This document shows, in pieces, positions 17,959 to 47,880 of a stretch of 64,000 nt of DNA. Where the stretch lies: assembly GCA_002269645.1 (NCBI GenBank), contig NIVC01000544.1:372001-436000 (forward strand). The letters run 5' to 3'. The position numbers and the translations under genes were made by a program. Source of the stretch: Macrostomum lignano (lineage: Eukaryota). Position 1 is the stretch's first letter; the number at the start of each line of letters is the position of its first letter. The notes below the pieces were generated by a model that saw nothing but the letters and a program-made list of their open reading frames with translations, did not search any database and was not told where the DNA came from.

Positions 17959-18004
17959 TTTTCAGCTAAATATTTCGTTTAATTATATTCAGATAGCTAC
18001 AAGC

Positions 18005-20086: not shown

Positions 20087-20143
<57 letters not shown>

Positions 20144-20230
20144 GCTTGTCAGTCTGTCTGTCTGCCGGCCTGTCTGCCTGCCTGCCTTTCTGTCTGTCTG
20201 TCTGTCTGTCTGTCTGCCTGTCAGTCTGCC

Positions 20231-20263
<33 letters not shown>

Positions 20264-20935
20264 GCTTGTCAGTCTGTCTGTCTGCCGGCCTGTCTGTCTG
20301 TCTGTCTGTCTGTCTGCTTGTCAGTCAGTCAGTTTGCTTGTCTATCCGTCTGTCTTTTTCGGTCTGTGTGACTGTCTGGCTGACAGACTGACCGTTTTTC
20401 GCCTGTCTGTCTGTCTCTGTCGTGTTTGTCCGTCTGTAACTGCATGTTTTTCTGTCTATGTCGGCATATCTGTCTAGTTCCCAACAGTGACTACCCTAAG
20501 CGTATATGTTCTACACCGCCAACAATACAGGGCTACGGCAAAGGCGCCGTCTTAAAAGAAGACATTGAAGAGAGCCTTGGCAACGCCGATGAAGCCATTA
20601 AGATTCTGGGCCATCGGGTTACAGTTCTAACTAGAACTAGCGACAAGAAAGTGAGTTATTTTTATAACGATCCCTCGTTGCAACTGCCAGTTGATGAAGA
20701 ATTTAAAAAGCTTTGGCGCAGCTGCACGGTGCAGAGCATCGACGAGCAGCAGATGCAGCAGTACCTCAGCGGCCAGGGCATCTCGGCTGCCGACGCTGAG
20801 AAGCCGCTCGGCTTCACACCGGCGTCGCGATCCGGCCGCCGCGGCGCTCGTGCCGGTAAGAAAGCAAATAAAGCGGTCAAATTAAAGGACAACGAGCACG
20901 TCACCCATATGCTGGAGGATTTTGGCGATAAGTGA
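18005..20935 (+). CDS. GTF2E2: General transcription factor IIE subunit beta, about 307 aa, 3 exons
   Basis: Exons 18005-18358, 19405-19569, 20531-20935 (all phase 0). MDPALLRERKKF start, HPLALEEILEET, EALPQNPK, YIFKPIY, LPVDEEFKKLWRS, YLSGQGIS and KDNEHVTHMLEDF match the TFIIE-beta family as I recall it. Confidence 0.93.
18405..19182. repeat. About 18-bp minisatellite GGGCGCCAGCTACAGAGA in GTF2E2 intron 1
   Basis: Direct tandem copies. Confidence 0.92.
19899..20060. mobile_element. Foldback/MITE hairpin in GTF2E2 intron 2
   Basis: Arms of about 65-70 bp: GCGCAACCTTGGGAATCACTCGGGCGTTTCTATTGGCAAC..ACATGTAAGTCGCTATTGG versus the reverse complement of 19997-20060. The spacer contains the palindrome GTCACGTGAC. 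Confidence 0.7.
20088..20420. repeat. (TCTG)n microsatellite in GTF2E2 intron 2
   Basis: Visible directly. Confidence 0.95.
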
Positions 20936-23326: not shown

Positions 23327-25491
23327 ATGGCAAGTCGCTCAGACGCTGCAGATCAGAACTTTGACTACATGTTCAAATTATTGATTATTGGCAATTCGTC
23401 GGTTGGCAAGACATCATTTTTATTTCGCTATGCGGACGATTCGTTCTCGTCGGCTTTCGTATCGACTGTTGGCATCGATTTCAAAGTCAAGACCGTGTTT
23501 AGAGATGATAAACGGGTTAAACTGCAGATCTGGGTGAGAGCGCTTGTTTGCCATTGCATGCACCCAGATGCTTGTAAGGGCTGGGTCAGTCCCCAGATCC
23601 TCAGTTACTAGTCCAGCCTCCCAGATCCTCAGTTGCTAGTCCAGCCTCCCAGATCCTCAGTTGCTAGTCCAGCCTCCCAGATCCTCAGTTGCTAGTCCAG
23701 CCTCCCAGATCCTCAGTTGCTAGTCCAGCCTCCCAGATCCTCAGTTGCTGGGCCAGCCTGGCAAATCCCCAGTTTCTGGGCCAGCCTCCCAGATCCTCAG
23801 TTGCTGAGCCAGCCTCCCAAGGTGTCAGTTGCTGGACTGCCAGCCTCCTAGAGTGTCAGTTGTTGGGCCAGCCTCCCAAGGTGTCAGTTGCTGGACTGCC
23901 AGCCTCCTAGAGTGTCAGTTGTTGGGCCAGCCTCCCAAGGTGTCAGTTGCTGGACTGCCAGCCTCCTAGAGTGTCAGTTGTTGGGCCAGCCTTCCTCAGA
24001 TCCTCAGTCTCCGAGCCGCCAAAAGCGGGTCCATGAGAATTGCCCATCGAGATTTGCCCGCAGGAGATTTTCCTGTGGAGATTTGCCCGCCGAGCTTTTC
24101 CCGCCGAGGTTTGTCTGCAATGCCCCCCCCCCAAAAAATGCATTTGATATGCAGTTACTATCAAAACGTTTGATTGGGTAAATCTCTTTATGAAGACTCA
24201 CTAAGCATTGGGGAGGCAATGCAGACTAAATCTGCCGCGTGGCCAAATGCGCTGCAGGAAAAGAGCATTGCGGGCAAACCTTGGCGGGAAATTCGTCTGC
24301 GGGCATTTCTCGTGCTCTCGCCAAAAGCACCACTACATCGAAACATGCCTATTAAACCACTTTTAAGACCACTACATTGCAACTATTTATTAATTAGTAG
24401 TCGTTATATATATATTTCATAAATATTAATCTACAGGACACGGCAGGCCAGGAACGCTACAGGACCATCACCACGGCTTACTATCGCGGTGCAATGGGAT
24501 TTATCCTCATGTATGACGTCACCAACGAGGATTCTTTTAACGCTGTGCAAGACTGGTAAGTTTTTCTCTAATCCATATATGATTATAGCTTTAATATATA
24601 TTATCCCGACAACTTACTCGCAATCAAAGACCGCCTGTGCCTCTTTCTGTCAATCATTTGCTCAGGTGCACCCAGATTAAGACTTACTCGTGGGACAATG
24701 CACAAGTGGTACTCGTTGGCAACAAGTGCGACCTAGATGAGGATCGAGTAGTCAGTGCCGAGCGAGGCCGACAGCTAGCTAATCAACTTGGCAAGCTTCT
24801 TTACATTTTTATGTTTATGTATTTGGTAATTTATTCTGTAGACGCATAATTTTCTTTTTCTATTACCCTAACAATAACAACCAAATTGCAGGCCTGGAAT
24901 TTTTCGAAACCTCAGCCAAGGACAATCTCAATGTTACCGATGTGTTTGAACGCTTAGTTGACATCATCTGCGAGCGGATGTCCGAAGCTACGGATGGCGA
25001 TGCTACTAGCGGAGGTGGGTAGCTTAATAGGCCTGGTGTAGGTAGAGATTACACAGACAGATAGACAAACAGACGGACAGGCGGACAGACAGACACTAAG
25101 ATGGACAGACAGACTGGCACTAAGATGGACAGACACTAAGACAAACAGACAGACAGATGCTAAGCCGGGAGCACGAGAATTTCTCGCAGGAAGTTTTCCC
25201 GCCGAGTTTTGTCCGCGCCAGCTTTTCCCGCAAGAGGTTTTCCCGCCGAGGTTTTCCCGCTGAGATTTTCCCGCAGCGAGGTTTTCCCGCGTGAGTTTTT
25301 CCCGCCGAGGCTTTCCCGCAGGTTTTTTCCAGTCGAAATTTCAAGTCAAATCCAGTCTACAATGCTGGACTAAATATATAGGCAGATCAATACAACGCAG
25401 ATAAACAAATAGACCGACCTGATTTTAACCTGCAGGCACCAGACTAAAGGATAGCTCCAACGAGAAGCAATCATCCGGCTGTAGCTGCTAA
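23327..25491 (+). CDS. RAB3: Rab3 small GTPase, 209 aa, 5 exons
   Basis: Exons 23327-23533, 24437-24555, 24666-24790, 24892-25014, 25436-25491 (630 nt). [67 protein letters not shown] and C-terminal GCSC* (CXC prenylation motif). Intron 3 has a GC donor. Confidence 0.96.
23588..23990. repeat. 28-bp then about 39-bp minisatellite (CCAGCCTCC core) in RAB3 intron 1
   Basis: CCAGCCTCCCAGATCCTCAGTTGCTAGT copies, followed by a longer derived unit. Confidence 0.9.
24020..24320. mobile_element. MITE-like element with TTTGCCCG/TTTCCCGC subterminal repeats in RAB3 intron 1; related fragment at 25165-25340 in intron 4
   Basis: Left end has GAGATTTGCCCG repeats; right end has the inverted CGGGCAAA/GCGGGAAA motifs. 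GGGCATTTCTCGTGCTC at 24301 is nearly the reverse complement of GAGCACGAGAATTTCTC at 25169. Confidence 0.5.
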
Positions 25492-27535
25492 AGACAATCG
25501 ATTTTTAGGCCCAAGACTGCTGCATGGAGAGTTCTGGCTAATTGTCCACTATGGGTTTTGATGGCTGAACAGTTAAATAGATTGCTTCACAAAAAACTGA
25601 GTTTTTTATTTAATGTAATGAAATTACATCGTTGTTTTGTTAAGTGTGCTTTTATAATATCCTAATTATTTGTTAAATTATATTGCCACCAAGAATCTAA
25701 TTTGCACTACTTGTATAAGTAATATAGCACACAGGTTTGTTGAGTTTTGTGACTTGTGTTTCTTTTGGGTTTATATTTTTCTTTTTTGTTTGTAATTGTT
25801 TTCAAGAAGTTCTTCAGAAAATTCCTATCGTTCTGTGATAGCTAAGCAAGACACAATTCGTCGAAATTTGTTTGTTTGTTTACTTACTATATTTAAATTT
25901 TGTCATTCTTTTGTTGCAAGTTTTCAATTTCTGTCATCGATCTTACAATCAGTCGCGGTGCTCAATTTATAACACTGGATTCGGCTTTCTGGACTATAGT
26001 TTCTTTCTCAGTTTACTTTCCGTTTCTGTGACATTATAGCGGTGTTGTACTAGTATTAGATAAATATTAAATTGATTATAATTTTACTACATATCGAGTG
26101 CAAATTAGTACCTTATTCAAACTTGTAATTCCATATGAATTGGTAAGCTTTTTTTTACTTATAATCTAAAGTCTGTCAATTTCGATTTATTGTTGTTACT
26201 TTATATTATAGATAAATATTTCATGTCATTTGATTTTGATTATTAATTTACAGCTTGCCACAGTTGTCGTCCATTCTAGCTCTATAAAGTTTCTGTTTTA
26301 TTTTTTATAGAAAAACATTGCTTCGTATGTACTATTTATATAGTCAGTAGTCTTTGTTACTCGTATTATACCTACATTAGTTAATCATTATAATCAATTG
26401 AAAACTAACCATAACCATAATTAGCCTAAAGCTAGACAAACTTTAAATTAACAGACATTAGTTTGTATCTGTTATATGTTGGTCTGTCTAAACTTTATAT
26501 TAATTTCTAATTCTAATGGGCTTTAATTATATTTCTTGCCCAAGCCTAGTGCTGTTTTGTTTTTAATGTACTTTTTGTCGTGACTGTCTAATCTAATAGT
26601 GTAATTTCAAGATCTACGAGTATATAATTGTTAAACAGCAATTTGGTTAGCCGCCCGTAATTTTGACGCCGATTATAAAAGTTAGATAAGATAAGATTGG
26701 CTTGGCGGGTTTAGAAAAATCGATAATATAGCCAACCCACCCACACGAGACAGTGAGTTAAAAGCCTGGTTAAGCCCAGTCAACCACGATTGGTTGGTTC
26801 GGCACTGGGTCTGATGGGGGAGTGGGGCTTAGAAAATTTATAGCCAAGCGCAATCCGAAGTCTTAAAATAGTATTTACATGAGAGTACTTATTAAATGTG
26901 GTCGTTAAAACAAAATCGGTTGGTTGTTGTTTAAATTCGACCAGATTGTATGTCCTCGTGTACTTAAATTACTATAATTCTTTATTGTTTATCTGTAAAT
27001 TTTGTTAACAAAAAACGTCCGCAAAATTTGGCTTGTCGTGTTCATTAAAAAGAAATTGACATATTAGTTTTTTTATTTTCAACGGCTTTTTAGAATGTGT
27101 ATTTGTGATTGTATTTAAGGAAAAGCATTGCTGGACAAAATGCGTAATATATATATAATAGTATTCATGATTATATAGACAGGTATACATGTGTAATCGA
27201 CTAACTTAAATGTTATTATACTTGACTGTCGTGTTTGTTGTTCCATTCATTTTTTGGGGCTTGCGATTATCTATAATGTTAGCCTTCGTTCAACAGATGT
27301 TACATTCGCACTACAAATTGGTCTATAAATCTCTTGAATTAACAAAAGCTGAAAAGTGCTCGAATGTTGATTGTTTAACGGTATGCTGTACTACTCTTGA
27401 TAGGGTGGTAATTAAAGCAACAGGACCAGATATCGTGACTTCAAAATTGCCTACTATAAGTAAAAAACTTTGGTTGTATGTTTATAAGTTAAATTTTCCT
27501 GTTAATTCAGTTAATTCGCATGCAATTTCCAGTCC

Positions 27536-30500: not shown

Positions 30501-30753
30501 ATGCGTGTACTGGTTCCCAGTGATCCAATCCGAGTACAAAGGCGCCGACAGTCTACCAGTGCATCCATGTTTGCAGCTAATTGCCTCTGTTGAACTGCCC
30601 ATGACGCATCGTACAGCCAGAGTGATGGTCTGTGTTCAACGGCTTCCTATGATCGATACGCCTGAACTAGTTGCTATGGCTAGTAATGGCGCTACAATTG
30701 TTAATCACGATCATCACCAGCTAAGATCTAGCCACTATAGCCGTAAAAAGTAG
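27536..30753 (+). CDS. TRMT11: tRNA (guanine(10)-N2)-methyltransferase TRMT11, about 524 aa, 3 exons
   Basis: Exons 27536-28243, 28786-29399, 30501-30753 (1575 nt). FIGNTSM, VVDPFVGSGSIL (SAM motif I), LTDPPYGIRE (DPPY motif), LVPGGRCVYWFP, VHPCLQL and N-terminal YAQFRFAEF match TRMT11. Confidence 0.92.
28372..28610 (+). repeat. Dispersed repeat family B, copy 1 (TRMT11 intron 1); copy 2 at 61511-61730
   Basis: Both start TTCAGTGGACTGGCTAAT and share AGTTGTTTACGCCTGC, the exact TTCTTCTTTGCTACTGAACTGAAAGTAGAAAGCTGTTTT, and AGTTATTTTAGTATCTGTGG. Confidence 0.85.
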
Positions 30754-31020
30754 TCAAAGATGAGCTCTACTACTGATATCAGTAGAGTGTCGGCATTTTT
30801 CAACAGTGTGTATTTTGATTACCTAAACTATGCGCCTATAAATTCAAAACTTGGGATTATTTTGGTGAAAACTTACGTCTTGTTACTTCTTCTGACTGCT
30901 CTTTTATCTACACAATGTGCTGCATTTAATGCTTGCTTTAAATTAAAACAAATATACAATGTATGAAATACATCAGCAATTACTTTTTGTCTCAGTATCA
31001 CTCCTGAACAATCAGTTTTC

Positions 31021-32090
31021 ACAAACTCCAAGCTACACAAACCCCGAGGGCCCGAGCTACACAAACCCCAAGCTACACAAACCCCAAGCTACACAAACTC
31101 CAAGCTACACAAACCCCAAGCTACACAAACTCCAAGCTACACAAACCCCAAGCTACACAAACCCCAAGCTACACAAACTCCAAGCTACACAAACCCCAAG
31201 CTACACAAACTCCAAGCTACACAAACCCCAAGCTACACAAACTCCAAGCTACAAAAACCCCAAGCTACACAAACCCCGAGGGCCCGAGCTACACAAACTC
31301 CAAGCTACACAAACTCCAAGCTACACAAACCCCAAGCTACACAAACCCCAAGCTACACAAACCCCAAGCTACACAAACTCCAAGCTACACAAACCCCCAA
31401 GCTACACAAACCCCCAAGCTACACAAACCCCAAGCTACACAAACCCCAAGCTACACAAACCCCAAGCTACACAAACCCCAAGCTACACAAACCCCAAGCT
31501 ACACAAACTCCAAGCTACACAAACCCCAAGCTACACAAACCCCAAGCTACATAAACTCCAAGCTACACAAACTCCAAGCTACACAAACCCCAAGCTACAA
31601 AAACCCCAAGCTACACAAACCCCAAGCTACACAAACCCCAAGCTACATAAACTCCAAGCTACACAAACTCCAAGCTACACAAACCCCAAGCTACACAAAC
31701 TCCAAGCTACACAAATTCCAAGCTACATAAACTCCAAGCTACACAAACCCCAAGCTACACAAACCCCAAGCTACACAAACCCCAAGCTACATAAACTCCA
31801 AGCTACACAAACTCCAAGCTACACAAACCCCAAGCTACGCAAACTCCAAGCTACACAAATTCCAAGCTACATAAACTCCAAGCTACACAAACCCCAAGCT
31901 ACACAAACCCCAAGCTACACAAACCCCAAGCTACACAAACCCCAAGCTACATAAACTCCAAGCTACACAAACTCCAAGCTACACAAATTCCAAGCTACAC
32001 AAACCCCAAGCTACATAAACTCCAAGCTACACAAACTCCAAGCTACATAAACTCCAAGCTACACAAACTCCAAGCTACACAAGCCCCAAG
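31021..32090. repeat. 16-bp minisatellite CAAGCTACACAAAC(C/T)C between TRMT11 and CABLES
   Basis: About 1.07 kb of tandem copies. Confidence 0.95.
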
Positions 32091-32196
32091 CTTCTCAGAG
32101 AGTCTCCCTTGGACAATCGCCGTGAGCAGTAAAACAGAATCTCAGCATATAAATGATTAATATTAGACATTGCATCTTGTCCAAACTCTGTTGCAG

Positions 32197-35100
32197 CCAC
32201 CCCAGACCAGACGGTCGCCTCGCCCTCCGAACTTGCCGCTTAGCAACAACACCGATGCTTCGGCAACGTCGAATACTGCGTCAGCCACAAACGCCGCCGA
32301 TTCCCCGTCGAATCCGGCTCGACTATCGTCGAAGCGTTTGCGAGCCGCGGCGCGTCTGAAAGCGCGCAAACGCGCGGCCGCTTTGAACTTTTTGGCCAGC
32401 ATCTCGCTTGACGGCGTCTATGGCGAAAATTGCGCCTCGGCCGCTGCAGACGCCGATCAACTGGACAACGACGACGATGCCAGCAGCGCCTGTTGCGAAG
32501 GTGCCTCCACTGCCATCTGCGGCAGCGAGTTCGTTGATGACAACGACGAATTTAGCCGTTCGGCAGTCTGCAGCGTTGTTAATCAGGATGAAATTGCTGG
32601 CAGCGTGAGTGTGCTTTTGCTGATTTGTCTGATAACTATGAGTTGGTTTCAAAGTCTGCATATACGTGGGCTTCTCAGATCCCCAAACTGACCTTGCAGA
32701 CCTCCCAGATCATCTAACTGACCTTGAAGACCCCCAGATCCCCAAACTGACCTTGCAAACCTCCCACATCCTTAAACTGACCTTGAAGACTTTCCAAATC
32801 ATTAAACTGATCTTGAAGACCCACGTGCAGATCCCCAAACTGACCTTTCAAACCTCCCAGATCCTTAAACTGACCTTGAAGACTTCCCAGATCATCGAAC
32901 TGACATTGAAGACTTACAGATCCCAACAGATCATCAAACTGACCTTGCAGAATTCTCAAATCTCAAACGTACGGACAAATTTTAATAAATTTCATATTTC
33001 CTAATTATTTTATTTTTTCGTGTTTGTGCACTTACTGATACTATACTAATGCAAAAGTCTATTGGTTCGTGGACGTCATCAATAAGACCTCAGTTTCTTC
33101 TTGCGGCTATTCGTCTAAATTCTATTTAGCTATACTCGCTGATAAAGAGATCGTGTTTGAAAGCGATCTGCTATCACATGAAATCTGTCTGTCTGCTTGC
33201 CTGATAGTAGACAGGGGTGGCTTTTTCTGTTTTAAAAGGTTCTTTGAGACAACTTGCATTCGTCTCCTTTTGAATGACGTCAATCTGCAAGCTGTTAACG
33301 TTATGTGCTAGTAACTAGGCTAATTTACAATATATAACTGTGTTCTCTACGGTTTCACCAGTACGATAAGGCACTGCCAGGAAGGTTCTCGGACAAGTCT
33401 TGACCTTTGAATTTGATTAATGCATTTTCATGTTTTCAGATAAATAAGATTTTTTAAATCTGGGTTTATATAGTTACTAAAATCCTGTTAATGCTTTATA
33501 TCAAATCTTTAGGCGTGAATCCTTAATTTAAACTTTCTCGAAAGTGGCATCTTAAAATGATGTGGAGGTTTCCCAGAAAGTAACTTTTTCGAGGATGTGA
33601 AGGCTTCCAGGAAGTGACGTTTTCGAAGATTTAGAGGTTTTCAGGAAGTGACGTTTTCGAGGATTTTGAGGTTACCAGGAAGTGCCTTTTTCGAAGATTT
33701 GGAGGTTTCCAGGAAGTGACGTTTTCGAAGATTTGAAGGTTGCCAGGAGGTGACGTTTTCGAAGATTTGGAGGTTTCCAGGAAGTGACTTTTTAGAAGAT
33801 TTGGGGAGGTTTCCAGGAAGGGACGTTTTCGAAGATTTGGAGGTTTCCAGGAAGTGACGTTTTCGAAGATTTGGAGGTTTCCAGGAGGTGACGTTTTCGA
33901 AGATTTGGAGGTTTCCAGGAGGTGACGTTTTCGAAGATTTGGAGGTTTCCAGGAGGTGACTTTTTGATTACTGAAAGTGACTTTCAAGGATGTGGAGGTT
34001 TTCAGGAATTTACGTTTTCGTAACATTTTGGAGAAAGTGGGCGTTTCGATAAGTCGACATCTTTGAAAAGCTAGCAAAACAGATTTTAAGTAAATAACAT
34101 CGAAATTGATATCGATGTTTTATAATTCTATGCTCGCAGATTGCAAACAGTTTGGAATCATCAACCACCGCTGCAGCTGTTGCTGGCTCATTGTCGACGA
34201 GAAATCCTCAATACCAGCACTACCACCAGCAGCAGCATAGCGGCGGTCACCATCGGCACAGGCGTCAGTCTGCCGATCAGTCGCCGCTGCCGCTGTTTGT
34301 CGAGGTGCCCGGCCAGAGTCTGTCGCCTCCCACCGACGCTGGCGTAGTCGTTGCGGTTCGCTATCGAACTCAATCGGAGTTTAGAGCTCAATTAAGCGTC
34401 CCATCTGGTTTCGACTACTCTTCTAGTAGCAGACGCTGGAGCCGGCAGCGGGCCGATCGATCTCGAACAACTTCGTCGTCTAATCACAGTTCATTGTCTG
34501 GACCCGACACTATGATTGGTAGTGGAGCTCAGGGCTCCTCCATTTTTGGTCGTCAAGCGGCCTCGTCAACGTCAGATCGTGGCGACGGCGTAGTCGGCGG
34601 TGGAGGCGGCGTCGAAGATATCGCAGATTTGGCTGAAATTATTGGAGGGCCTTTTAGGTAGGCGATGATGAGAATGTGTTATAAAGATATCGTGGATTTA
34701 TGGAATGACAGAGTACTAGCAATCGTTTGATTTAATAGCTCGTAGGGGTAAAGAGAGACGGAACAACTTAAAAATCACAGAGATTTACAGGTGTTATATG
34801 TAGAATGACAGGGGATGTGAAGATTGTCGGAGCAATACTGAGTGTGACAGTGATATTGATAGTGATGCATTGATAGGGATAATGACACAGGGATATGAAG
34901 AGTGACACAGGAATAGGGAGAGTGACACAGCGATAGAGAGAGTGACAGAAGGATATTGAGCGTGACAATAATATTGATAGTGATACGGGGATAGGAAGAG
35001 TGACACGAATAGAGAGAGTGACACAGGAATAGCGAGAGTGACACAGGAATAGCGAGAGTGACGCAGGGATAAAGAGAGTGACACAGGAATATCGAGAGTG

Positions 35101-38100
35101 ACACAGGGATAGCGAGAGTGACACAGGAATAGCGAGAGTAACACAGGAATAGGGAGAGTGACACAGGAATAGCGAGAGTGACACAGGAATAGCGAGAGTG
35201 ACGCAGGGATAAAGAGAGTGACAGGAATAGCGAGAGTGACACAGGAATAGCGAGAGTGACACAGGAATAGCGAGAGTGACGCAGGGATAAAGAGAGTGAC
35301 ACAGGAATATCGAGAGTGACACACGAATATTGAGAGTGACACAGGGATATTGAGACACTAATTTATAATTTTGTACCTACCTAACTAAATTGTGCTGCAG
35401 CTCTTCGAACGGCTCTCGAAAGCGAACTAGGACTCGATCGTTTCGTGGAATTGAAAGCTTCTGTAAGCATAATTAATATTTTATTGGCTTGTATCTGTGT
35501 TGATTTTATCATTGTGTATAATGCCTATGACTTGTTATCCCAACATTCTAAGCTCCCGCTACCGTTAACGCCGCCATACAAGCAGGTAATATCAGATATA
35601 TGTATCGGTATAGCAGTTTAATCGAAAGTATTAAGTATGAAACCTGCTGCAATTACTTGTATTTATTGTTAGCATCTGTCAATATTGAAAATCAATAACA
35701 ATCGTGGTGTTGATGGCATTTCGATTTTATTATCTAACACATTAAGTATTTACTTTACTCGGTGTTGCGGTATAATTTTTGCTGTCATTTCTTTGGTTTA
35801 TGCTGCTCATGTTAATTGCAATAGCTTGAGTTTTTGTTTAATATGAAACGGTTAAGAAGACGCACTCATTAGAACTAATTGTTTCCTCCACGGATGTTTC
35901 CTCTAGGCTCTCTACTCTTATATTATCATCATCTCTTCTTGCGTTTCCGTCACGGCTTCCCTGCATATCCCTCTCCTCTTCTCTCCACCCCCTGTCTGCT
36001 CCTGCGGTCCGTTTCTCCTTTTTCTGCCCTCTGTCTGTCTCTGCCTCCGCTCTGCCCCCTTTGTCTGTTTCTCCTCTTTTCCGCTCCCCTCTCCGCCCTC
36101 CATCTTCGCTCCTCTCCCAACCTCCTGTCCCGCCCACTCTCTCTGCCATTCTGTCTCCCACTGCTCTTCTCTCCGCCCCCTCTCTCCGCCCCCTATGACC
36201 GCTCCTTCTCTTTCCGCACCTCTCTCCGCCCCTTTTGTCCGCTCCTCCTCTTTTCGCCCCTCTCTCCGCCCCTTTTGTCCGCTCCTTCTCTTTCCGCCCC
36301 CTCTCCGCCCCCTATGTCCGCTCCTTCTCTTTCCGCACCTCTCTCCGCCCCTCCTCTCCGCCCCCTCCTCTCCGCACCCTGTCCGCTCCTCCTCTTTCCG
36401 CCCCTCTCTCCGCACCCTATGTCCGCTCCTCCTCTTTCCGCCCCTCTCTCCGCCCCCTATGTCCACTCCTCTTTCCGCCCCCTCTCCGCCCCCTTTGTCC
36501 GCTCCTTCTCTTTCCGCCCCCTCTCCGTCCCCTATGTCCGCTCCTTCTCTTCCCGCCCTCTCTCCGCCCCTTTTGTCCGCTCCTTCTCTTTCCGCCCCCT
36601 CTCCGCCCCCTATGTCCGCTCCTCCTCTTTTCGCCCCTCTCTCCGCCCCTTTTGTCCACTCCTCTTTCCGCCCCCTCTCCGCCCCCTATGTCCGCTCCTT
36701 CTCTTTCCGCACCTCTCTCCGCCCCTCCTCTCCGCCCCCTCCTCTCCGCACCCTGTCCGCTCCTCCTCTTTCCGCCCCTCTCCGCCCCCTATGTCCCCTC
36801 CTTCTCTTTCCGCCCTCTCTCCGCCCCTTTTGTCCGCTCCTTCTCTTTCCGCCCCCTCTCCGCCCCCTATGTCCGCTCCTCCTCTTTTCGCCCCTCTCTC
36901 CGCCCCTTTTGTCCACTCCTCTTTCCGCCCCCTCTCCGCCCCCTATGTCCGCTCCTTCTCTTTCCGCACCTCTCTCCGCCTCTCTCTTCGCCCCTCCTCT
37001 CCGCCCGTCCTCTCCGCCCCTCTCTCCGCCCCTCCTCTCCGCCCCTCTCTCCGCACATCTCTCCGCCCCCTCCTCTCCGCACCCTGTCTGCTCCTCCTCT
37101 TTCCGCCCCTCCCTCCGCCCTTCTGTGTACCGTTGCTTTTCTTTCCACTCCTCCCTTTCCGCTCCCTCTTTTTCCGCCCTTCTGTATCCACCCCCTCCCT
37201 CTGCTCCCCCTCTCCGCCCCCACTCTCTCCGATCTTCTCTCTCCTTTCTCTCCGCCCCCCTTTTCCGCTCCACTTCCTTTCACTCAGCCTTTCAATTTAC
37301 GCAGCTTCAAGACGAAACCATGTGAGACGTGACTGTGTGAACTTCACTTTCATTGACTTGTTTTTGCGCCACCGGTTTCCTATTGGTATGCTAGCACTGG
37401 CGGTGTATTACAGGCTAAGGGAAATTTCTATATAATTTTCTGTCTGCCCTTTCTTCTTCTCTTTCTTCAACTCGTGGCTCAATGCATTTCCGTCTATAAG
37501 ACAGAGAAATTGCGGATGAATTCCTTAATCGCCTCGGGGTCGGTTCGAACTAGAGGGGAAAGTAGTTTGAGAATGAGGAATCGACACTTTTTATAATCAT
37601 AGCTATCGCCAGCCGGGTGAAAACTCGCTCCCATCCCAGCGTCTGTGCCACATCGCGTGTCCTTTTGAGGTCGATGCCTCATCATAATCTAAAAGCCTGG
37701 TTGATCTTAATCGCGTGCAACTGAGGAAAAATGATAGAAAGAATTCAAAACTTTCAATACGACTTTTATTGGCCATCTATGAGCGTAGTTAACGGTGAAT
37801 ATATTATTTTTTATAGTAGGGTGAGAACTTAGTAGCTCAGGGCTGTGACTTGTTTGGTTCGATGCCATGTGCGGCCACTTTCATTTGGGGCTAGTGTGCA
37901 CGTTCGATTTATTGAGGGCCAAGCCACAAGGCAGAGAGAGTGTACATTCCTGATGACTAGACAGTCAGGGCCGTTATACACCCTGTGTGAGCGTGTGTAC
38001 ATGTATAAGCGCGTTAATACTGTACCCAGGCACGCACTCACACACACGCTCACCGCGCTGAGCTGCTCTGCCCGCTGAAAGGAACCCAAAGGCCTATGTA

Positions 38101-40219
38101 CTCTCACTAGGAGGGCCCATGGTATTTCCGTGGCTTTCCCTGCGGGCAAGAGTTCTCCCATGCTAACACATAGGCGCCCGTCTGATACCGGCCCACGGAA
38201 TTTCCACGGCTTTCCCTGCGGGCAAGAGTTCTCCCATGCTAACACATAGGCGCCCGTCTGATACCGGCCCACGGAATTTCCACGGCTTTCCCTGTGGGCA
38301 AGAGTTCTCCCATGCTAACACATAGGCGCCCGTCTGATACCGGCCCACGGAATTTCCACGGCTTTCCCTGTGGGCAAGAGTTCTCCCATGCTAACACATA
38401 GGCGCCCGTCTGATACCGGCCCACGGAATTTCCACGGCTTTCCCTGTGGGCAAGAGTTCTCCCATGCTAACACATAGACGCCCGTCTGATACCGGCCCAC
38501 GGAATTTCCATGGCTTTCCCTGTGGGCAAGAGTTCTCCCATGCTAACACATAGGCGCCCGTCTGATACGGGCCCACGGAATTTCCACGGCTTTCCCTGCG
38601 GGCAAGAGTTCTCCCATGCTAACACATAGGCGCCCGTCTGATACCGGCCCACGGAATTTCCACGGCTTTCCCTGTGGGCAAGAGTTCTCCCATGCTAACA
38701 CATAGGCGCCCGTCTGATACCGGCCCACGGAATTTCCACGGCTTTCCCTGTGGGCAAGAGTTCTCCCATGCTAACACATAGGCGCCCGTCTGATACCGGC
38801 CCACGGAATTTCCACGGCTTTCCCTGTGGGCAAGAGTTCTCCCATGCTAACACATAGGCGCCCGTCTGATACCGGCCCACGGAATTTCCGCGGCTTTCCC
38901 TGCGGGCAAGAGTTCTCCCATGCCAACACATAGGCGCCCGTCTGATTCGGGCCCACGGAATTTTCACGGCTTCCCCGGTGGGCAAGAGTTCTCCCATGCC
39001 AACACATAGGCGCCCGTCTGATTCGGGCCCACGGAATTTTCACGGCTTCCCCGGTGGGCAAGAGTTCTCCCATGCCAACACATAGGCGCCCATCTGATTC
39101 GGGCCCACGGAATTTCCGCGGCTTCCCGGTGGGCAAGAGTTCTCCCATGCTAACACATAGGCGCCCGTCTGATACCGGTCCACGGAGTTTCCACGGCTTT
39201 CCCTGCAACAGTGTCCACTTCCCACATTTCCCCTACTACTTTAGATAGCTAGGAATAGCTGTCTGCCAATATGCAGTACAGCAGTTTACCAAAATATATT
39301 TAATAAATATGCATATACGATAAACGCATTTACTATACCTAAGAAGTTTACAATATTATAACTATCTAATTAAATAAACAGTCTGCGAATTACTATTGCT
39401 TGTTATAATGAAACGCAAAAATTTCAAACTCTAAATCTAGTCGGTCGACAGCGGCATAAGTCCAGTTCAGTCTCGACTTCAACCGACTCAATCACGGAGT
39501 TTCCAATATCTCCGCCGAAAGGTGTTTATCGCTGTCCGCCCACCACTACTGGCCTAGTTGTCAAGAAGGATCGCTTAAGCGAAAGGTATATTGCATCTTG
39601 AATAAAACGTTCTATGAATTATTCAATAGCAGAGTTCATGTCCCAGCGCACGCTTCCATTGTGATTGAAGCTGGTATTATAGTGCAGGATGTAGTGTAAT
39701 ACAGTAATACTGCATTGTATTTAGCTTGCGTTTGCATTGCCAACCGGAAGTGCATGCCAATGAATGAGTTTTAGCATCCATTGATTGAGTGAACTCTACT
39801 GCTGCTTCTTGCATCTATTTATAAACTTTTTCTGGAAGTTCTAGTTTAGTAAAGCGTTATATAATATAAAACTGTATTTTGCCTCCTCAAACTATTTACA
39901 GATGCGTCCTTGTTACTAACCGGAAGTCGCCATTCTATGCCTTTTCAATCGTCAAATTTTGTCGCGACTCTTCGGCTAATGCAAGGTATGTTTTTTTAAT
40001 TAGTTCAATGTTTCTGGACTGCTGACATCTTGCCTTGCTAATCTTTTCTCTTATATACTCTATGCTTCTACATTCTGTACTACTGTCCTTCTAGTGACTT
40101 TTACTGTTCAGGACTTCCATTCTTGCCTGTTTGTCTGTCTGTCTGTCTTTCTCAATGGCTGTTTGTCTGTCTGTCCGTCTGTCTGCCTGTCTGTCTGCCT
40201 GTCTTTCTGCCTGCCTGCC

Positions 40220-40260
<41 letters not shown>

Positions 40261-40311
40261 GCCTGTCTTTCTGCCTGCCTGCCTGTCTGTCTGTCTGTCT
40301 GTCTTTCTCAA

Positions 40312-40376
<65 letters not shown>

Positions 40377-40383
40377 TTCTCAA

Positions 40384-40462
<79 letters not shown>

Positions 40463-40927
40463 ACCGTCTGGTACGGCTCAGTATCAGAATTTCATTTATA
40501 TCATCACTTCGTCTGTCAGTGCATAGGGTTTTTAATTACGCCAATGTTGTCACGATTCTTCGAATACTAAGGTCTGATATATTTGCTAGAGTCTAGCTAT
40601 ATTCTACTCTGTCGCAAGCACACCGGCTATCATTGCAACCTCCCTGCTCCCGAATCGTCTTTCATCCAGCCGAAGCGACCAACCAGAATCCAGACTCCGT
40701 CATCACTCCAGCGGAAGCGTGTCGCCAACTCATGAGATCCTGCTGGCCCAATTTGGAGTTTTGCCTCGTTTCGAAGAAAATCAGGTGCGTCATTAGGAAA
40801 CTGCAGCAGCATGAATCAAATATGCACTAGTTAGTTTGTTAGGGTTAGTTAGTTAGTTACTTATTAGTTGGTTGGTTAGTTAGTTGGTTTGTTAGTCAGT
40901 TAGTTGGTTAGTTAGTTAGTTAGTCAA

Positions 40928-40992
<65 letters not shown>

Positions 40993-41043
40993 CAGTTAGT
41001 TAGTTAGTTAGTTAGTTAGTCAGTTAGTTAGTTAGTTAGTCAA

Positions 41044-41124
<81 letters not shown>

Positions 41125-41153
41125 CAGTTAGTTAGTTAGTTAGTTAGTTAGTC

Positions 41154-41196
<43 letters not shown>

Positions 41197-41199
41197 CAA

Positions 41200-41256
<57 letters not shown>

Positions 41257-41285
41257 CAGTTAGTTAGTTAGTTAGTTAGTTAGTC

Positions 41286-41324
<39 letters not shown>

Positions 41325-41339
41325 CAGTTAGTTAGTTAA

Positions 41340-41376
<37 letters not shown>

Positions 41377-41379
41377 CAA

Positions 41380-41440
<61 letters not shown>

Positions 41441-41489
41441 CAGTTAGTTAGTTAGTTAGTTAGTTAGTCAGTTAGTTAGTTAGTTAGTC

Positions 41490-41560
<71 letters not shown>

Positions 41561-41605
41561 CAGTTAGTTAGTTAGTCAGTTAGTTAGTTAGTTAGTTAGT
41601 TAGTC

Positions 41606-41644
<39 letters not shown>

Positions 41645-41647
41645 CAA

Positions 41648-41712
<65 letters not shown>

Positions 41713-41713
41713 C

Positions 41714-41744
<31 letters not shown>

Positions 41745-41745
41745 C

Positions 41746-41776
<31 letters not shown>

Positions 41777-41791
41777 CAGTTAGTTAGTTAA

Positions 41792-41832
<41 letters not shown>

Positions 41833-41835
41833 CAA

Positions 41836-41896
<61 letters not shown>

Positions 41897-41925
41897 CAGT
41901 TAGTTAGTTAGTTAGTTAGTTAGTC

Positions 41926-41956
<31 letters not shown>

Positions 41957-41957
41957 C

Positions 41958-42024
<67 letters not shown>

Positions 42025-45000
42025 CAGTTAGTTAGTTAGTAAGTTAGTTAGTTAGTTAGGCAGTTAGGCAGTTAGTTAGTTAGTTAGAGGGAGGCTAAGA
42101 GGAAGAGAGGGAGAAGACAGCAGGGAAGAGAACTAACGCACTGTTTGAATGTGAAGCTTATAATCCAGCACAGGCATGCAGCAATAATGATTATCGTATT
42201 GCCATTCACACCCATGGCCACCGCAGTCCGTGTCCTACGGTCATCTGCTGCAACCGTCTGCCGTTCGTCGCCGACGAGAGAGCGGCTCTTACAAGCGCTA
42301 CCTGTCGGTTGATGAGCACGAGTCCTACCCGCCAGCCGCTAACCAGACTGGCCTGTCTATATCTCCAAGTGAGTGCCTATAATAATAGTGATAGAAAATA
42401 TACGTCAGCTCTGTCTGGGACAACTCGATTGTCTTTTTTGTGACAATTTGACTGTCCGTGACAATTTCACTGGCTGTCAGTGACAATCTGATTGTCTATC
42501 AGTACTTGACAATTTGACACTGTCATTAACAATTGTTTGGACTGTCTATCAGTGACAATTCGAATCTGTCAGTGACCATCTGACTAGCTGTCAGTGACAA
42601 TCTGACTAGCTGTCAGTGACAATCTGACTGTCTATTAGTGACAAAGTGACAATGATGTCAGTGACAATCTGACTGTCTATTAGTGACAAAGTGACAATGA
42701 TGTCAGTGACAATCCGACTGTCTATTAGTGACAAAGTGACAATGAGGTCAGTGACAATCCGACTGTCTATTAGTGACAAAGTGACAATGATGTCAATGAC
42801 AATCTGACTGTCTATTAGTGACAAAGTGACAATGATGTCAGTGACAATCTGACTGTCTATTAGTGACAAAGTGACAATGATGTCAGTGACAATCTGACTG
42901 TCTATTAGTGACAAAGTGACAATGATGTCAGTGACAATCTGACTGTCTATTAGTGACAAAGTGACAATGATGTCAGTGACAATCTGACTGTCTCTTAGTG
43001 ACAAAGTGACAATGATTTCAGTGACAATCTGACTGTCTATTAGTGACAAAGTGACAATGATGTCAGTGACAATCTGACTGTCTATTAGTGACAAAGTGAC
43101 AATGATGTCAGTGACAATCGTCCGCACTTTGACAAAAAAACAAGCGAAATCGATTTTTCTGACAGTAAATTTACATTTTGTTGGCGCTGCGATAAAAAAG
43201 TTTTATGGGTTTTTACCTTAATCCAAAGGCAAAAAGAATGGGTGATTTGCTTAGGACCCTATTGCTTTAATATACCAGTTCAGCTCTTTAATAACTAGTG
43301 TGCATTCTTCTATTGTGTGTATATCTGCACTTTTCAGTTTTTCTTACCATAAATCACCTGAACGCACCCTTATTACAGCCCACACTCGCAGACGTCGGAC
43401 ATTAGCTGTTTCTAATAACAGTAAAAGCTTGTTTTTCTTTGATACGACACTATTTCTGCACGATGCCGTCATCAGCTTTTTCTACTTCTATTTTTTTCAA
43501 AACTCGACCCATACTCTTTTCCAGCTGTTATTAAACCTTTTCTTCTTAATCTGTGTTATCGATTTTTCAGTCTACACCTTCAACCCACCCACCTCCCTCC
43601 GCGTGTGTTTTATCGATTTTTCAGTCTACACCTTCAACTCACCCACCTCCCTCCGCGTGTGTGTTTTATCGATTTTCCAGCCTGTCCCTCAACCCACCCA
43701 CCTCCCTCCGCGTGTGTGTTTTATCGATTTTCCAGCCTGTCCCTCAACCCACCCACCTCCCTCCGCGTGTGTGTTTTATCGATTTTCCAGCCTGTCCCTC
43801 AACCCACCCACCTCCCTCCGCGTGTGTGTTTTATCGATTTTCCAGCCTGTCCCTCCACCCACCCACCTCTCTCTGCGTGTGTGTTTTTATCGATTTTCCA
43901 GCCTGTCCCTCAACCCACCCACCTCCCTCCGCGTGTCTGTTTTATCGATTTTCCACTTTTCCAGTCTCTAAACCTATTAAACCTAAAATTCACGGGCATG
44001 TGGAATTTTCGGTGGTTCTATAAAATGAATAGTTATCTACCTGATGTATGCACCTTGCGGTACAGTGTCTATTGTGTTCTTGGGTTTAGAGTGATCTTAA
44101 TATTTTACCAATTAACTTTTAATAACTGACATGTATAGACAGATATGCGTAATTGTGTTATTTATTATTACCAACTAATATAGAGCAGCCATATTTATTT
44201 TTGTCTATGTAAAATTATCTAGGTATAGACTAATATTTCCATTTTTAACTTGAACGAGTATCAATTTATTCATATTTTTACTCCATTTTGTCGCGCAGTT
44301 AAAGAATCCGCTCCATTGGTTGTCTACCATCCTCACCTGCTGGACAACCCGGATTTGACCTGCGGAAAGCATATGACTGTGCTCAATTTCACCTCCTACG
44401 TGGTAAGTTCAATTCTTTCAATTTTGTCAGTTTTCTTATTTAAAGCATGCCTTTTTCACAATGGCCTGTCTCTTTAAGACATCCGTGATGGAATACGTTC
44501 GACCGTCGGATCTGAAGAAGGATTTAAATCAACAATTTCGCGAGAGATTTCCCCAGATCCAGTTGACTTTGAGTAAACTGCGCAGCTTGAAAGCCGATCT
44601 GCACAGAATTGCTAAAAAGGTAAAGTTTGTGCAACCCTGTTTTAACTTTTTTGGAGCATAGCATCCACCTTCTTGTCCTCTGTGCCTTCTGTGAGACACT
44701 CTTCCTGTATCTATACATGCTGTCAATCAGCCCTTCCTGTCTCTCTATCCATGCTGTGGGACACCCCTTCCTGTCTCTATCCATGCTGTGGGACACTCCT
44801 TCCTGTCTCTATCCATGCTGTGGGACACTCCTTCCTGTCTCTATCCATGCTGTGGGACACTCCTTCCTGTCTCTATCCATGCTGTGGGACACCCCTTCCT
44901 GTCTCTATCCATGCTGTGGGACACTCCTTCCTGTCTCTATCCATGCTGTGGGACACTCCTTCCTGTCTCTATCCATGCTGTGGGACACTCCTTCCTGTCT

Positions 45001-45855
45001 CTATCCATGCTGTGGGACACCCCTTCCTGTCTCTATCCTTATGCTTTGAGACACCCCTTCCTGTCTCTATCCATGCTGTGGGACACCCCTTCCTGTCTCT
45101 CTATCCATGCTGTGGGACACCCCTTCCTGTCTCTCTATCCATGCTGTGGGACACCCCTTCCTGTCTCTATCCATGCTGTGGGACACCCCTTCCTGTCTCT
45201 ATTCATGCTGTGGGACACCCCTTCCTGTCTCTCTATCCATGCTGTGGGACACCCTTCCTGTCTCTATTCATACCGTGAGACACCCCTTCTTGCCTCGTGT
45301 GTCTCCCATGCAACGTTTTTCTCCCTATTTTTTCACAACGCAGTCGAGCATGGACCTGTGGACTTTGGCCCAATCGTTTGTATTCTTCGAGAAGCTGGCA
45401 CTGAAAGGCCTCATCAACAAGGCCAATAGGAAGTGCTGCTGCGCCGCTAGCCTGGTCCTGTCCGCTAAGCTCAACGACGTCAAAGGAGCCGAATTGAACA
45501 ACTTATTCGACGTAAGGCATCTTCCTACCTTTGCTTTATTTATTATTGGATCTCTGGCGCTTCACGCTTCAAGTCACAATGGGCCGCTGTGCACCCTGTG
45601 TAAGCGTGTGTATGAGTGCGTACAGTACAGTACAGTATTAGCTTAGCTTGCATGCTGCTCAGGAGTGACTGCGGGACAATGTCAGCCCCAAACTTGCCGT
45701 TTCATCAGGAACTGGAAACTGCGTTTCGTTTGACTAAACGAGAAATTCTGCTGTTTGAACTGCCAATCCTTGTTGGCCTGGAGTTCTCTCTGGTCCTGCC
45801 CGACTACGAGATATCGCCCCATCTGCACCGGCTGGAGACTGAAACTGTCAGATAG
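32197..45855 (+). CDS. CABLES: CABLES (CDK5 and ABL1 enzyme substrate), about 677 codons, 11 exons plus one optional exon; initiator codon not found in the genomic sequence
   Basis: Exons 32197-32604, 34140-34657, 35401-35462, 39441-39585, 39902-39985, 40670-40784, 42227-42368, (43379-43420), 44299-44402, 44479-44619, 45344-45511, 45709-45855; all phases chain correctly. N-terminal [17 protein letters not shown], internal [18 protein letters not shown] and [10 protein letters not shown], and the C-terminal cyclin-like box [16 protein letters not shown]...[33 protein letters not shown]...[16 protein letters not shown]...[16 protein letters not shown]. Middle exons are less certain than the ends. 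Confidence 0.88.
32680..32955. repeat. About 27-bp degenerate minisatellite CAGATCCCCAAACTGACCTTGAAGAC (CABLES intron 1)
   Basis: Repeated AAACTGACCTTG. Confidence 0.8.
33590..34020. repeat. About 34-bp minisatellite GTTTTCGAAGATTTGGAGGTTTCCAGGAAGTGAC (CABLES intron 1)
   Basis: Direct tandem copies. Confidence 0.9.
34890..35355. repeat. 20-bp minisatellite GAGAGTGACACAGGAATAGC (CABLES intron 2)
   Basis: Direct tandem copies. Confidence 0.9.
35940..37290. repeat. C/T-rich compound satellite (CCCCTCTCCGCC, TGTCCGCTCCTTCTCTTTCCG; CABLES intron 3)
   Basis: About 1.35 kb, almost purine-free on the + strand apart from single G. Confidence 0.92.
38120..39205. repeat. 76-bp tandem satellite, about 14 copies (CABLES intron 3)
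   Basis: Unit TTTCCACGGCTTTCCCTGTGGGCAAGAGTTCTCCCATGCTAACACATAGGCGCCCGTCTGATACCGGCCCACGGAA; ORF-track starts recur every 76 nt. Confidence 0.95.
40125..40461. repeat. (TCTG)n microsatellite (CABLES intron 5)
   Basis: Visible directly. Confidence 0.95.
40828..42087. repeat. (TTAG)n microsatellite of about 1.25 kb (CABLES intron 6)
   Basis: Visible directly, with TCAG/TCAA variants. Confidence 0.97.
42560..43120. repeat. 45-bp minisatellite GTCAGTGACAATCTGACTGTCTATTAGTGACAAAGTGACAATGAT
   Basis: About 11 near-identical copies. Confidence 0.93.
43555..43965. repeat. 55-bp minisatellite CAGCCTGTCCCTCAACCCACCCACCTCCCTCCGCGTGTGTGTTTTATCGATTTTC
   Basis: About 7 copies. Confidence 0.92.
44740..45285. 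repeat. 32-bp minisatellite CCATGCTGTGGGACACTCCTTCCTGTCTCTAT
   Basis: Direct tandem copies in a CABLES intron. Confidence 0.93.
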
Positions 45856-46269
45856 GACACTGATAATATAGATTCTGCAATAATTTTACAATTATCAACT
45901 TAACTTAATCCGTGTCAAGGTTTTATTCTCTCTATATTCCAATGATCCCTGACTCAAAAAATGCTCTTGATTTTGTAGTCGTTTTGTAAAATTAATTCAT
46001 TGCAATCAGGCCGCTACAAGTATTGCTGACAATTTCCGAAGAGAATAATGTTCCATGTCTGTTCCATGATTCTATATTTTTATTCTACAATCGCATCCCT
46101 TCTTGCCTAGTTTCCGTGTTTGAATATTAAAATACAAATTTATGTATGGCTATCATTCGGTGATTACGTGATAATGTGTTGATTCTAGTGAATTTGATTA
46201 TTTGTGATTGGATTCTTCTAAATTATTTATTAATCCTTTCTGATTCAACTTTGAGTGACCATGTCATCC

Positions 46270-46830
46270 CGGTTGCACTTTTACAGAGTGACAATGCTAT
46301 TTTGGTTGCAGTTTCAATGAGTGACAATCCCATTCCGGTTGCAGTTTTCAGGAGTGACAATCCCATTCTGGTTGCAGTTTTAATGAGTGACAATGCCATT
46401 CTGGTTGCAGTTTTTAGGAGTGACAATCCCATTCTGGTTGCAGTTTTAATGAGTGACAATGCCATTCTGGTTGCAGTTTTAATGAGTGATAATGCCATTC
46501 TGGTTGCAGTTTTCAGGAGTGACAATCCCATTCCGGTTGCAGTTTTAAGGAGTGACAATCCCATTCCGGTTGCAGTTTTCAGGAGTGACAATGCCATTCT
46601 GCTTGCAGTTTTAAGGAGTGACAATCCCATTCTGGTTGCAGTTTTAATGAGTGACAATCCCATTCTGCTTGCAGTTTTCAGGAGTGACAATCCCATTCCG
46701 GTTGCAGTTTTCAGGAGTGACAATCCCATTCTGGTTGCAGTTTTCAGGAGTGACAATCCCATTCTGGTTGCAGTTTTAATGAGTGACAATGCCATTCTGG
46801 TTGCAGTTTTCAGGAGTGACAATGCCAATG
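46270..46830. repeat. 33-bp minisatellite GAGTGACAATCCCATTCTGGTTGCAGTTTTCAG
   Basis: About 17 copies, downstream of CABLES. Confidence 0.93.
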
Positions 46831-47319
46831 ATTTTAAGGATTAACACTGCTGTTCAAGTACTTGAAATGCTTAGAGATTAATAATTAATTAGATAATTTA
46901 ATTTTCATCTTTCAAGATACGATCGTATGTGGCGTGATTTCATTTCAACAATTTTTCTTATATCGAGTTTTTTTGACCGTCCCATTACAAAGAATAATCA
47001 ACTGTATTAGTGATTACTTAACCATTTTATTAATCATGGATGAAGTAGAAAAGCAATTTCATAATTACTGTGTGACCCACATTTGCTTTTCCTAAGCAGC
47101 TTGTCACGTGAACTGTCGGGGAGCACATTTGCAATTTAGCCGCCCCCTGTAAAAAACTGTTCAAATTACCGGATAGTATAGAATAAGGGTGCACCGATGC
47201 TTGAGTGAAAAACACAATTCAACAAAAAAATAAGGGTCTTTTAAGGAAAATAAGGGATATACGTAATTACCCACGCCTCCGAAAGCATTGCTGTTTATCA
47301 TTTACCTGCGTCTTAAAGA

Positions 47320-47880
47320 AAGAATCACCCTCGAACTTCGAGGAATCGCCCTTCAAACTTATTGAGGAATCGCCTCCAAACTCTTAGGAATCGCCCTCAG
47401 ACTCTTAGGAATCGCCCTCAACTCTTAGGAATCGCCCTCAAACTCTTAGAAATCGCCCTCAAACTCTGAGGAATCGCTCTCAAACTCTAAAGAATCGCCC
47501 TCAAACTCCGAGAAATCGCCTTCAAACTCTAAAGAATCGCCCTCAAACTCCGAGAAATCGCCTTCAAACTCTAAAGAATCGCCCTCAAACTCCGAGAAAT
47601 CGCCTTCAAACTCTAAAGAATCGCCCTCAAACTCCAAGGAATCGCTCTCAAACTCTGAGGAATCGCCCTCAAACTCTGAGGAATCGCCCTCAAACTCCGA
47701 GAAATCGCCTTCAAACTCTAAAGAATCGCCCTCAAACTCCGAGAAATCGCCTTCAAACTCTAAAGAATCGCCCTCAAACTCCGAGAAATCGCCTTCAAAC
47801 TCTAAAGAATCGCCCTCAAACTCCAAGGAATCGCTCTCAAACTCTGAGGAATCGCCCTCAAACTCTGAGAAATCGCCTTC
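47320..47880. repeat. 21-bp minisatellite GAATCGCCCTCAAACTCTGAG with a 42-bp higher-order alternation
   Basis: Alternating CTCTAAAGAA / CTCCGAGAAA variants. Confidence 0.92.

Follow-up and report, generated by a model that had tools for sequence, protein, structure and literature searches.

A CABLES gene copy of Macrostomum lignano as a candidate for translation initiation at the spliced-leader AUG

The CABLES locus and its first coding exon

The stretch analysed here, 64,000 nucleotides of the flatworm Macrostomum lignano (assembly GCA_002269645.1, contig NIVC01000544.1, positions 372,001 to 436,000; termed the window and numbered from its first letter), carries a CABLES gene whose first coding exon opens at a 3′ splice site and displays no start codon of its own. 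The gene was modelled with tblastn and AG/GT boundaries under the guidance of the M. lignano protein A0A1I8GF42 (P0103), and comprises 10 exons and 634 codons extending from 32197 to 45855 on the forward strand, with all boundaries AG/GT and a TAG stop codon at 45853-45855 (Table 1). A cyclin box was identified at the C-terminus (Pfam Cyclin_N, 4.9e-5; bit score 23.5, cut-off 23), and the best named relatives are annotated as “CDK5 and ABL1 enzyme substrate 1”, with 53-58% identity over 96-99% of the query. For exon 2, a second M. lignano UniRef entry, A0A1I8GM17, matches with 99% identity. This entry links exon 2 to two small exons (35402-35463 and 35554-35587), followed by intron read-through to a stop, while A0A1I8GF42 skips both; the A0A1I8GM17 form is explained either by alternative splicing to a truncated isoform or by faulty annotation, and a contig search for it retrieved no encoding contig. 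An earlier model that included the two small exons was rejected, as they produce a phase clash with the exon at 42227.

Direct reading of the sequence places an AG at 32195-32196, followed by CCA CCC CAG from 32197, in agreement with the first-pass annotation of this DNA, which had exon 1 beginning in phase 0 at the 32196/32197 splice site; a further in-phase AG ends at 32205. The donor is GTGAGT at 32605, and the CABLES frame is open from 32167 to 32605 while the remaining two frames are closed across the region. Between 32146-32195 and 32196-32245 the G+C content climbs from 0.30 to 0.68, a step that falls exactly at the AG, so that base composition marks the same exon boundary. Upstream of the acceptor, at a distance of 30-38 nt, the frame is interrupted by the previously noted TAG at 32164-32166 and by an additional TAA at 32158-32160. 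Translation of 32167-32604 in the CABLES frame revealed no Met codon, as had been stated for the region preceding the conserved motif, and the first in-frame genomic ATG is codon 262, within exon 2. By itself the missing Met is just mildly unusual, as the whole protein of ~635 residues has 4-5 Met.

The frame of exon 1 is anchored by a 17-residue N-terminal segment with counterparts in two CABLES homologues encoded on Logan contigs (L001 and L002), where it reads MATVMRRHRSRRRAAALTFLSNISLDG and MALDLRRRRARRRLAAIAFLSNISLDG, respectively. Identities to these segments are 13/17 and 11/17, compared with 9/17 for the best of 200 shuffles, and both homologues carry CABLES cyclin boxes C-terminally on the same contigs, although pairwise BLASTP alone is weak for this segment (E = 0.045). 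The segment is a genuine CABLES N-terminal motif that fixes the exon 1 frame; exon 1 is therefore coding in that frame, and translation must start 5′ of 32365.

The region upstream of CABLES contains, on the same strand, the 3′ end of a gene termed TRMT11-like after the name given to it previously; the domain alone was tested here, and an internal exon encodes a Pfam UPF0020/RMKL-like methyltransferase (6e-11). A minisatellite follows that occupies most of the intergenic, putatively outron, space, and thereafter ~100 nt of unique DNA lead to the acceptor. The layout described in the first-pass annotation thus holds, with a minisatellite of 1,042 bp rather than 1.07 kb. An ATTAAA hexamer implies that the TRMT11-like transcript probably ends near 30965. 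The tail of the putative outron contains a GTGAGC at 32122 and an out-of-frame ATG at 32153.

The spliced leader and the exon 1 acceptor

M. lignano possesses a single spliced leader (SL) of 35 nt, CGGTCTCTTACTGCGAAGACTCAATTTATTGCATG, which ends in ATG (PMC8629364; an independent consensus is given in PMC5173321). These two reports bear out the premise, made when the flatworm origin of the DNA was itself a guess, that the leader of the host terminates in AUG. About 30% of M. lignano genes are trans-spliced, with an enrichment of conserved genes, and the top trans-splice acceptor motif is [T/C]TNCAG (PMC8629364). The TTGCAG at 32191-32196 matches this motif and is its sole forward-strand match from 30577 through the exon 1 acceptor. 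When the SL was joined in silico to 32197 (SL plus exons 1-3; predicted junction TTTATTGCATG followed by CCACCCCAGACCAGACGG), its AUG opened the CABLES frame directly with no stop between, confirming the in-frame AUG that had been predicted for this junction. In the simulated mRNA no other in-frame AUG than that of the SL occurs before codon 262, and five out-of-frame AUGs lie between the two; for the motif to be translated from an AUG, this AUG must therefore be supplied from beyond exon 1.

The anatomy of exon 1, its frame, the host, the SL sequence and the lack of another in-frame AUG are established, while trans-splicing at this site and actual use of the SL AUG are inferred. In the proposed mechanism, the CABLES pre-mRNA would be SL trans-spliced at the TTGCAG acceptor (32196/32197), an event that would remove the minisatellite-filled outron together with its out-of-frame ATG and the in-frame stops. 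The AUG at the end of the leader would then land in frame immediately before CCA CCC CAG and act as initiator. We consider it fairly probable that the window copy of CABLES receives the SL at 32197 and begins translation at its AUG.

The genomic setting is consistent with this interpretation. Some 15% of M. lignano genes belong to operons, in which repeats lengthen the spacers; repeat-adjusted operon distances peak at ~100 bp and a 1-kb threshold has been used (PMC8629364). The TRMT11-like stop and the CABLES acceptor lie 1,443 nt apart; the minisatellite accounts for 1,042 nt of this, and the repeat-adjusted distance is ~190-400 nt. Since this is below 1 kb and the upstream gene lies on the same strand, the spacing fits the M. 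lignano operon criterion (PMC8629364), and CABLES appears to lie downstream of the TRMT11-like gene in an operon-like arrangement with putative co-transcription. The TRMT11-like gene has its ATG at 27536, with a TTCCAG acceptor motif at 27527-27532, 3 nt before the ATG. An SL joined there would place its AUG in frame with the TRMT11-like open reading frame (ORF), giving M-S-M-E-T, which suggests that this gene may also be trans-spliced. No SL RNA gene was found in the 64-kb window.

The sister copy and alternative origins of the start codon

An exhaustive HMMER search with exon 1 retrieved one protein, the 636-residue M. lignano A0A1I8GF42, which is 98% identical; exon 1 aligns to its residues 3-138 with 97-98% identity. 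Together with the 99% match to A0A1I8GM17, this protein identifies the host as M. lignano. Over the whole model, 10/634 residues differ between the two copies, 8 of the 10 within the first 275 residues. One difference concerns codon 24, which is ACG (Thr) in the window and ATG in A0A1I8GF42. Lying 32 codons before the conserved motif, it is the sole position 5′ of the motif with a genomic start in another copy, and the 23 codons preceding it are the same in both copies and free of stops. The claim that CABLES has no genomic start codon therefore stands for the window copy, in which no in-frame genomic AUG precedes the motif, and fails for the sister copy, in which one does. The statement that CABLES translation depends on trans-splicing was likewise too broad, both for this ATG and because divergent paralogues exist. 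At least one more divergent CABLES-like paralogue is represented in M. lignano by fragments that lack N-termini (P0028, P0079, P0084 and P0093) and are 41-58% identical in the cyclin box.

The A0A1I8GF42 model itself has neither an initial Met nor an upstream exon. It starts with LQPPQ, which corresponds to TTG CAG plus exon 1 and hence to window position 32191. When a simulated SL-bearing cDNA was aligned to the genome, the alignment ended at 32191 with blastn- or megablast-like scoring and at 32185 with exonerate-like scoring, because the SL end, TTGCA(T)G, resembles the genomic TTGCAG and the alignment runs into the acceptor. The coincidence at 32191 suggests that the A0A1I8GF42 model was built from an SL-bearing transcript.

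Several observations weigh against SL-AUG initiation of the window copy. The coincidence at 32191 is suggestive and falls short of proof. The motif YTNCAG occurs ~2.4 times per kb per strand, no more commonly than in shuffles, which makes the acceptor match alone weak. The context of the SL AUG, UUGCAUGC, has U at -3 and C at +4 and is poor by the vertebrate Kozak rule. Protein searches, exact look-ups and a metagenome scan revealed no transcript, read or protein with the SL-exon 1 junction. Among these, the exact look-up covered six full-length variants (the model with and without an initial M, the model preceded by LQ, the sister copy with an initial M, the Met262 start and the sister Met26 start) with no match, and scanning metagenomes with the 5′ end of exon 1 likewise produced 0 matches. 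Homologue searches with exons 1 and 2 and with SL-fused exon 1 found no protein covering exon 1; they carry little weight, because A0A1I8GF42 is in the collection at 97-98% identity and was missed as well, pointing to a lossy word index. The supplements of four M. lignano papers contain no CABLES entry. Two further points, a possible conventional start at codon 24 and candidate ATG exons upstream, lead to alternative explanations.

The ATG of codon 24 in A0A1I8GF42 stands in a G(-3) context and may represent a conventional start that was lost in the window copy. In that case the window would hold a decaying or weak duplicate that makes no full-length protein, or a truncated one from Met 262 without the motif, and the in-frame acceptor would be coincidental. 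Such a start would be in keeping with the position of Met in other CABLES homologues, just 10-13 residues before the motif, and M. lignano became polyploid recently and carries redundant gene copies. All 10 exons of the window copy are nevertheless open, with canonical AG/GT sites, although at so low a divergence from the sister copy intact exons are weak evidence. The shared, stop-free 23 codons before codon 24 argue against a conventional start at this position, and the ACG contains a CpG, which makes ACG to ATG the easier direction of mutation. Start loss is an unlikely account of the locus; furthermore, it excludes SL-AUG initiation only if the site is not trans-spliced, since an SL AUG would rescue the lost start. 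A further scenario, possible but rather doubtful, is that after the recent M. lignano genome duplication the CABLES homeologues came to differ in their start, the window copy (ACG) being wholly SL-AUG dependent while the sister copy (ATG) can also start conventionally.

A conventional ATG exon in 30754-31050 or further 5′, cis-spliced to 32197, is the second alternative and appears slightly more improbable than start loss. The first-pass annotation had found no upstream ATG-bearing exon that splices in frame. Formal candidates do exist: stop-free reading from ATG 30760 reaches phase-0 GTs after 30786, 30807, 30864 (TTG/GTGAAA), 30876 and 30960, and reading from ATG 30959 reaches two more GTs, and parasitic flatworms often use the same acceptors for cis- and trans-splicing. 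The donors of the candidate exons are poor, however, as none of them fits GT[G/A]AG, and with just 7 nt between the TRMT11-like stop and the ATG 30760 candidates, most of these fall within the A+T-rich 3′ untranslated region of that gene, 5′ of the ATTAAA. The minisatellite can supply no such exon, as a scan found neither ATG nor GT inside it. An intron of 74 nt could be delimited by the GTGAGC at 32122, whose phase agrees with 32197, but the frame 5′ of this site, open back to ~31795 in the minisatellite after a stop at ~31792, has no ATG. The A0A1I8GF42 model also lacks an exon of this kind. A TRMT11-CABLES read-through fusion was rejected, as the last TRMT11-like exon is preceded by a phase 2 donor and the fusion would be out of frame.

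Initiation at a near-cognate codon in frame after the TAG (CTG 32188-32190, TTG 32191-32193 or ACG 32266-32268, the latter with G at -3) on an unspliced or otherwise capped transcript is very improbable, because the CTG and TTG sit in the acceptor and would be lost on splicing, the unspliced leader contains the ATG at 32153 that opens a 68-codon out-of-frame ORF, and specific support is lacking.

Features of the window and comparison with known systems

The coordinates of the CABLES exons and of the elements upstream are collected in Table 1.

Table 1. Features of the CABLES gene and its upstream region, in window coordinates.
Feature	Position	Strand	Remarks
TRMT11-like gene, last exon and stop	30501-30753	+	TAG at 30751-30753; ORF and sequence reading
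ATTAAA	30942-30947	+	Hexamer scan; no other poly(A) signal of canonical type from the TRMT11-like stop to the minisatellite; putative function
Minisatellite	31051-32092	+	16-nt unit CCCAAGCTACACAAAC x 64.5, 1,042 bp (Tandem Repeats Finder)
Unique putative outron tail	32093-32196	+	A+T-rich, ~100 nt; acceptor TTGCAG at 32191-32196
CABLES coding exon 1	32197-32604	+	136 codons, phase 0, no in-frame ATG
Codon 24, ACG (Thr)	32266-32268	+	Met (ATG) in A0A1I8GF42 (residue 26); alignment
Conserved 17-residue CABLES N-terminal motif	32365-32415	+	Codons 57-73; basic + AAL.FL..ISLDG type
CABLES exon 2	34140-34657	+	99% identical to A0A1I8GM17 (P0001); holds the ATG of codon 262
CABLES exons 3-5	39466-39585, 39902-39985, 40712-40784	+	tblastn of A0A1I8GF42, AG/GT boundaries
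CABLES exons 6-10	42227-42368, 44299-44402, 44479-44619, 45344-45511, 45709-45855	+	Cyclin box, TAG stop

The window is unusually rich in minisatellites and simple repeats (20046-20474, 32676-32924, 35841-37432, 37832-39240, 40004-40590, 44624-45300, 46164-46841, 47409-47950 and 54040-55090), several of which fill CABLES introns, including an array of a ~76-nt unit at 37832-39240 and (CTGT)n-type tracts. Other genes in the window encode an RRM protein at 5655-8323 on the reverse strand (RRM_1, 3e-17), a Rab/Ras GTPase at 23328-25019 on the forward strand, a rhodopsin-family G-protein-coupled receptor at 50309-55606 on the reverse strand and a Cys-loop ligand-gated channel at 59933-61237 on the forward strand, the last a single 435-codon ORF (Neur_chan_LBD, 7e-53). 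A weak TFIIE-beta-like ORF is found at 17951-18469 on the forward strand.

The CABLES candidate is most likely a sound but ordinary instance of a mechanism well documented in flatworms. Initiation at the SL AUG was described in 2006 and is on record for flatworm genes numbering from dozens to hundreds, and the present case opens no new question. If confirmed, it would provide a clean gene-specific example, a conserved regulator with its sole start codon from the SL, in a free-living, early-branching flatworm, extending a mechanism shown in parasitic Neodermata to a species in which transgenesis allows testing. Should the homeologues differ in their start, the pair would serve as a natural experiment on SL-AUG initiation and on whether the loss of a start codon is buffered by trans-splicing, in a transgenesis-capable flatworm. 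For annotation, Met-less models that start at a [T/C]TNCAG acceptor, such as A0A1I8GF42, probably need just the SL ATG to be complete, and are not fragments.

The use of the SL AUG as initiator in flatworms, invoked in the first-pass annotation, is borne out by the literature on Schistosoma and Echinococcus granulosus. In Schistosoma, the 3′-terminal AUG of the SL provides the initiator Met (Cheng, Cohen, Ndegwa & Davis 2006, J Biol Chem 281:733, as quoted in PMC9851317 and PMC3510090), and the 2006 work is quoted in later papers for >40 S. mansoni cDNAs that need it. Similar to S. mansoni and S. japonicum, the host of the window copy has an SL ending in ...UUGCAUG, whose AUG would be in frame with the main ORF, and the copy has no genomic AUG before the conserved N-terminus. 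Schistosoma, however, belongs to the Neodermata and its junctions and translation were shown experimentally, whereas Macrostomum is a free-living member of the Macrostomorpha and the present case is drawn from DNA and annotation. In E. granulosus, the account in PMC3510090 gives 143/187 SL clusters as full-length only with the SL ATG and calls this use phylogenetically conserved in Neodermata. The resemblance lies in some transcripts that, as set out there, need the SL ATG to match conserved N-termini; those cases are cDNA-based, while CABLES is known here from DNA and does not appear among the examples given in the relevant passages of PMC3510090.

All reported flatworm SLs end in AUG, and the final SL ATG has already been described as a translation start codon in work on the M. 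cliftonense and M. hystrix genomes. The studies of Ustyantsev & Berezikov 2021 (PMC8629364) and Wudarski et al. 2017 (PMC5730564) concern the same organism and the same SL as the present one, and the acceptor motif and repeat-inflated operon spacers agree with those seen at CABLES, but unlike the interpretation proposed here they do not analyse the SL AUG as a start codon. A further parallel is provided by the slORFs described with slORFfinder (PMC9851317), in which the start codon is likewise supplied by the leader and not by the gene. These are mostly novel or alternative ORFs, frequently with non-AUG starts, in nematodes, Oikopleura and trypanosomes, whereas the ORF that would start at the SL AUG in the window copy of CABLES is the main, conserved one.

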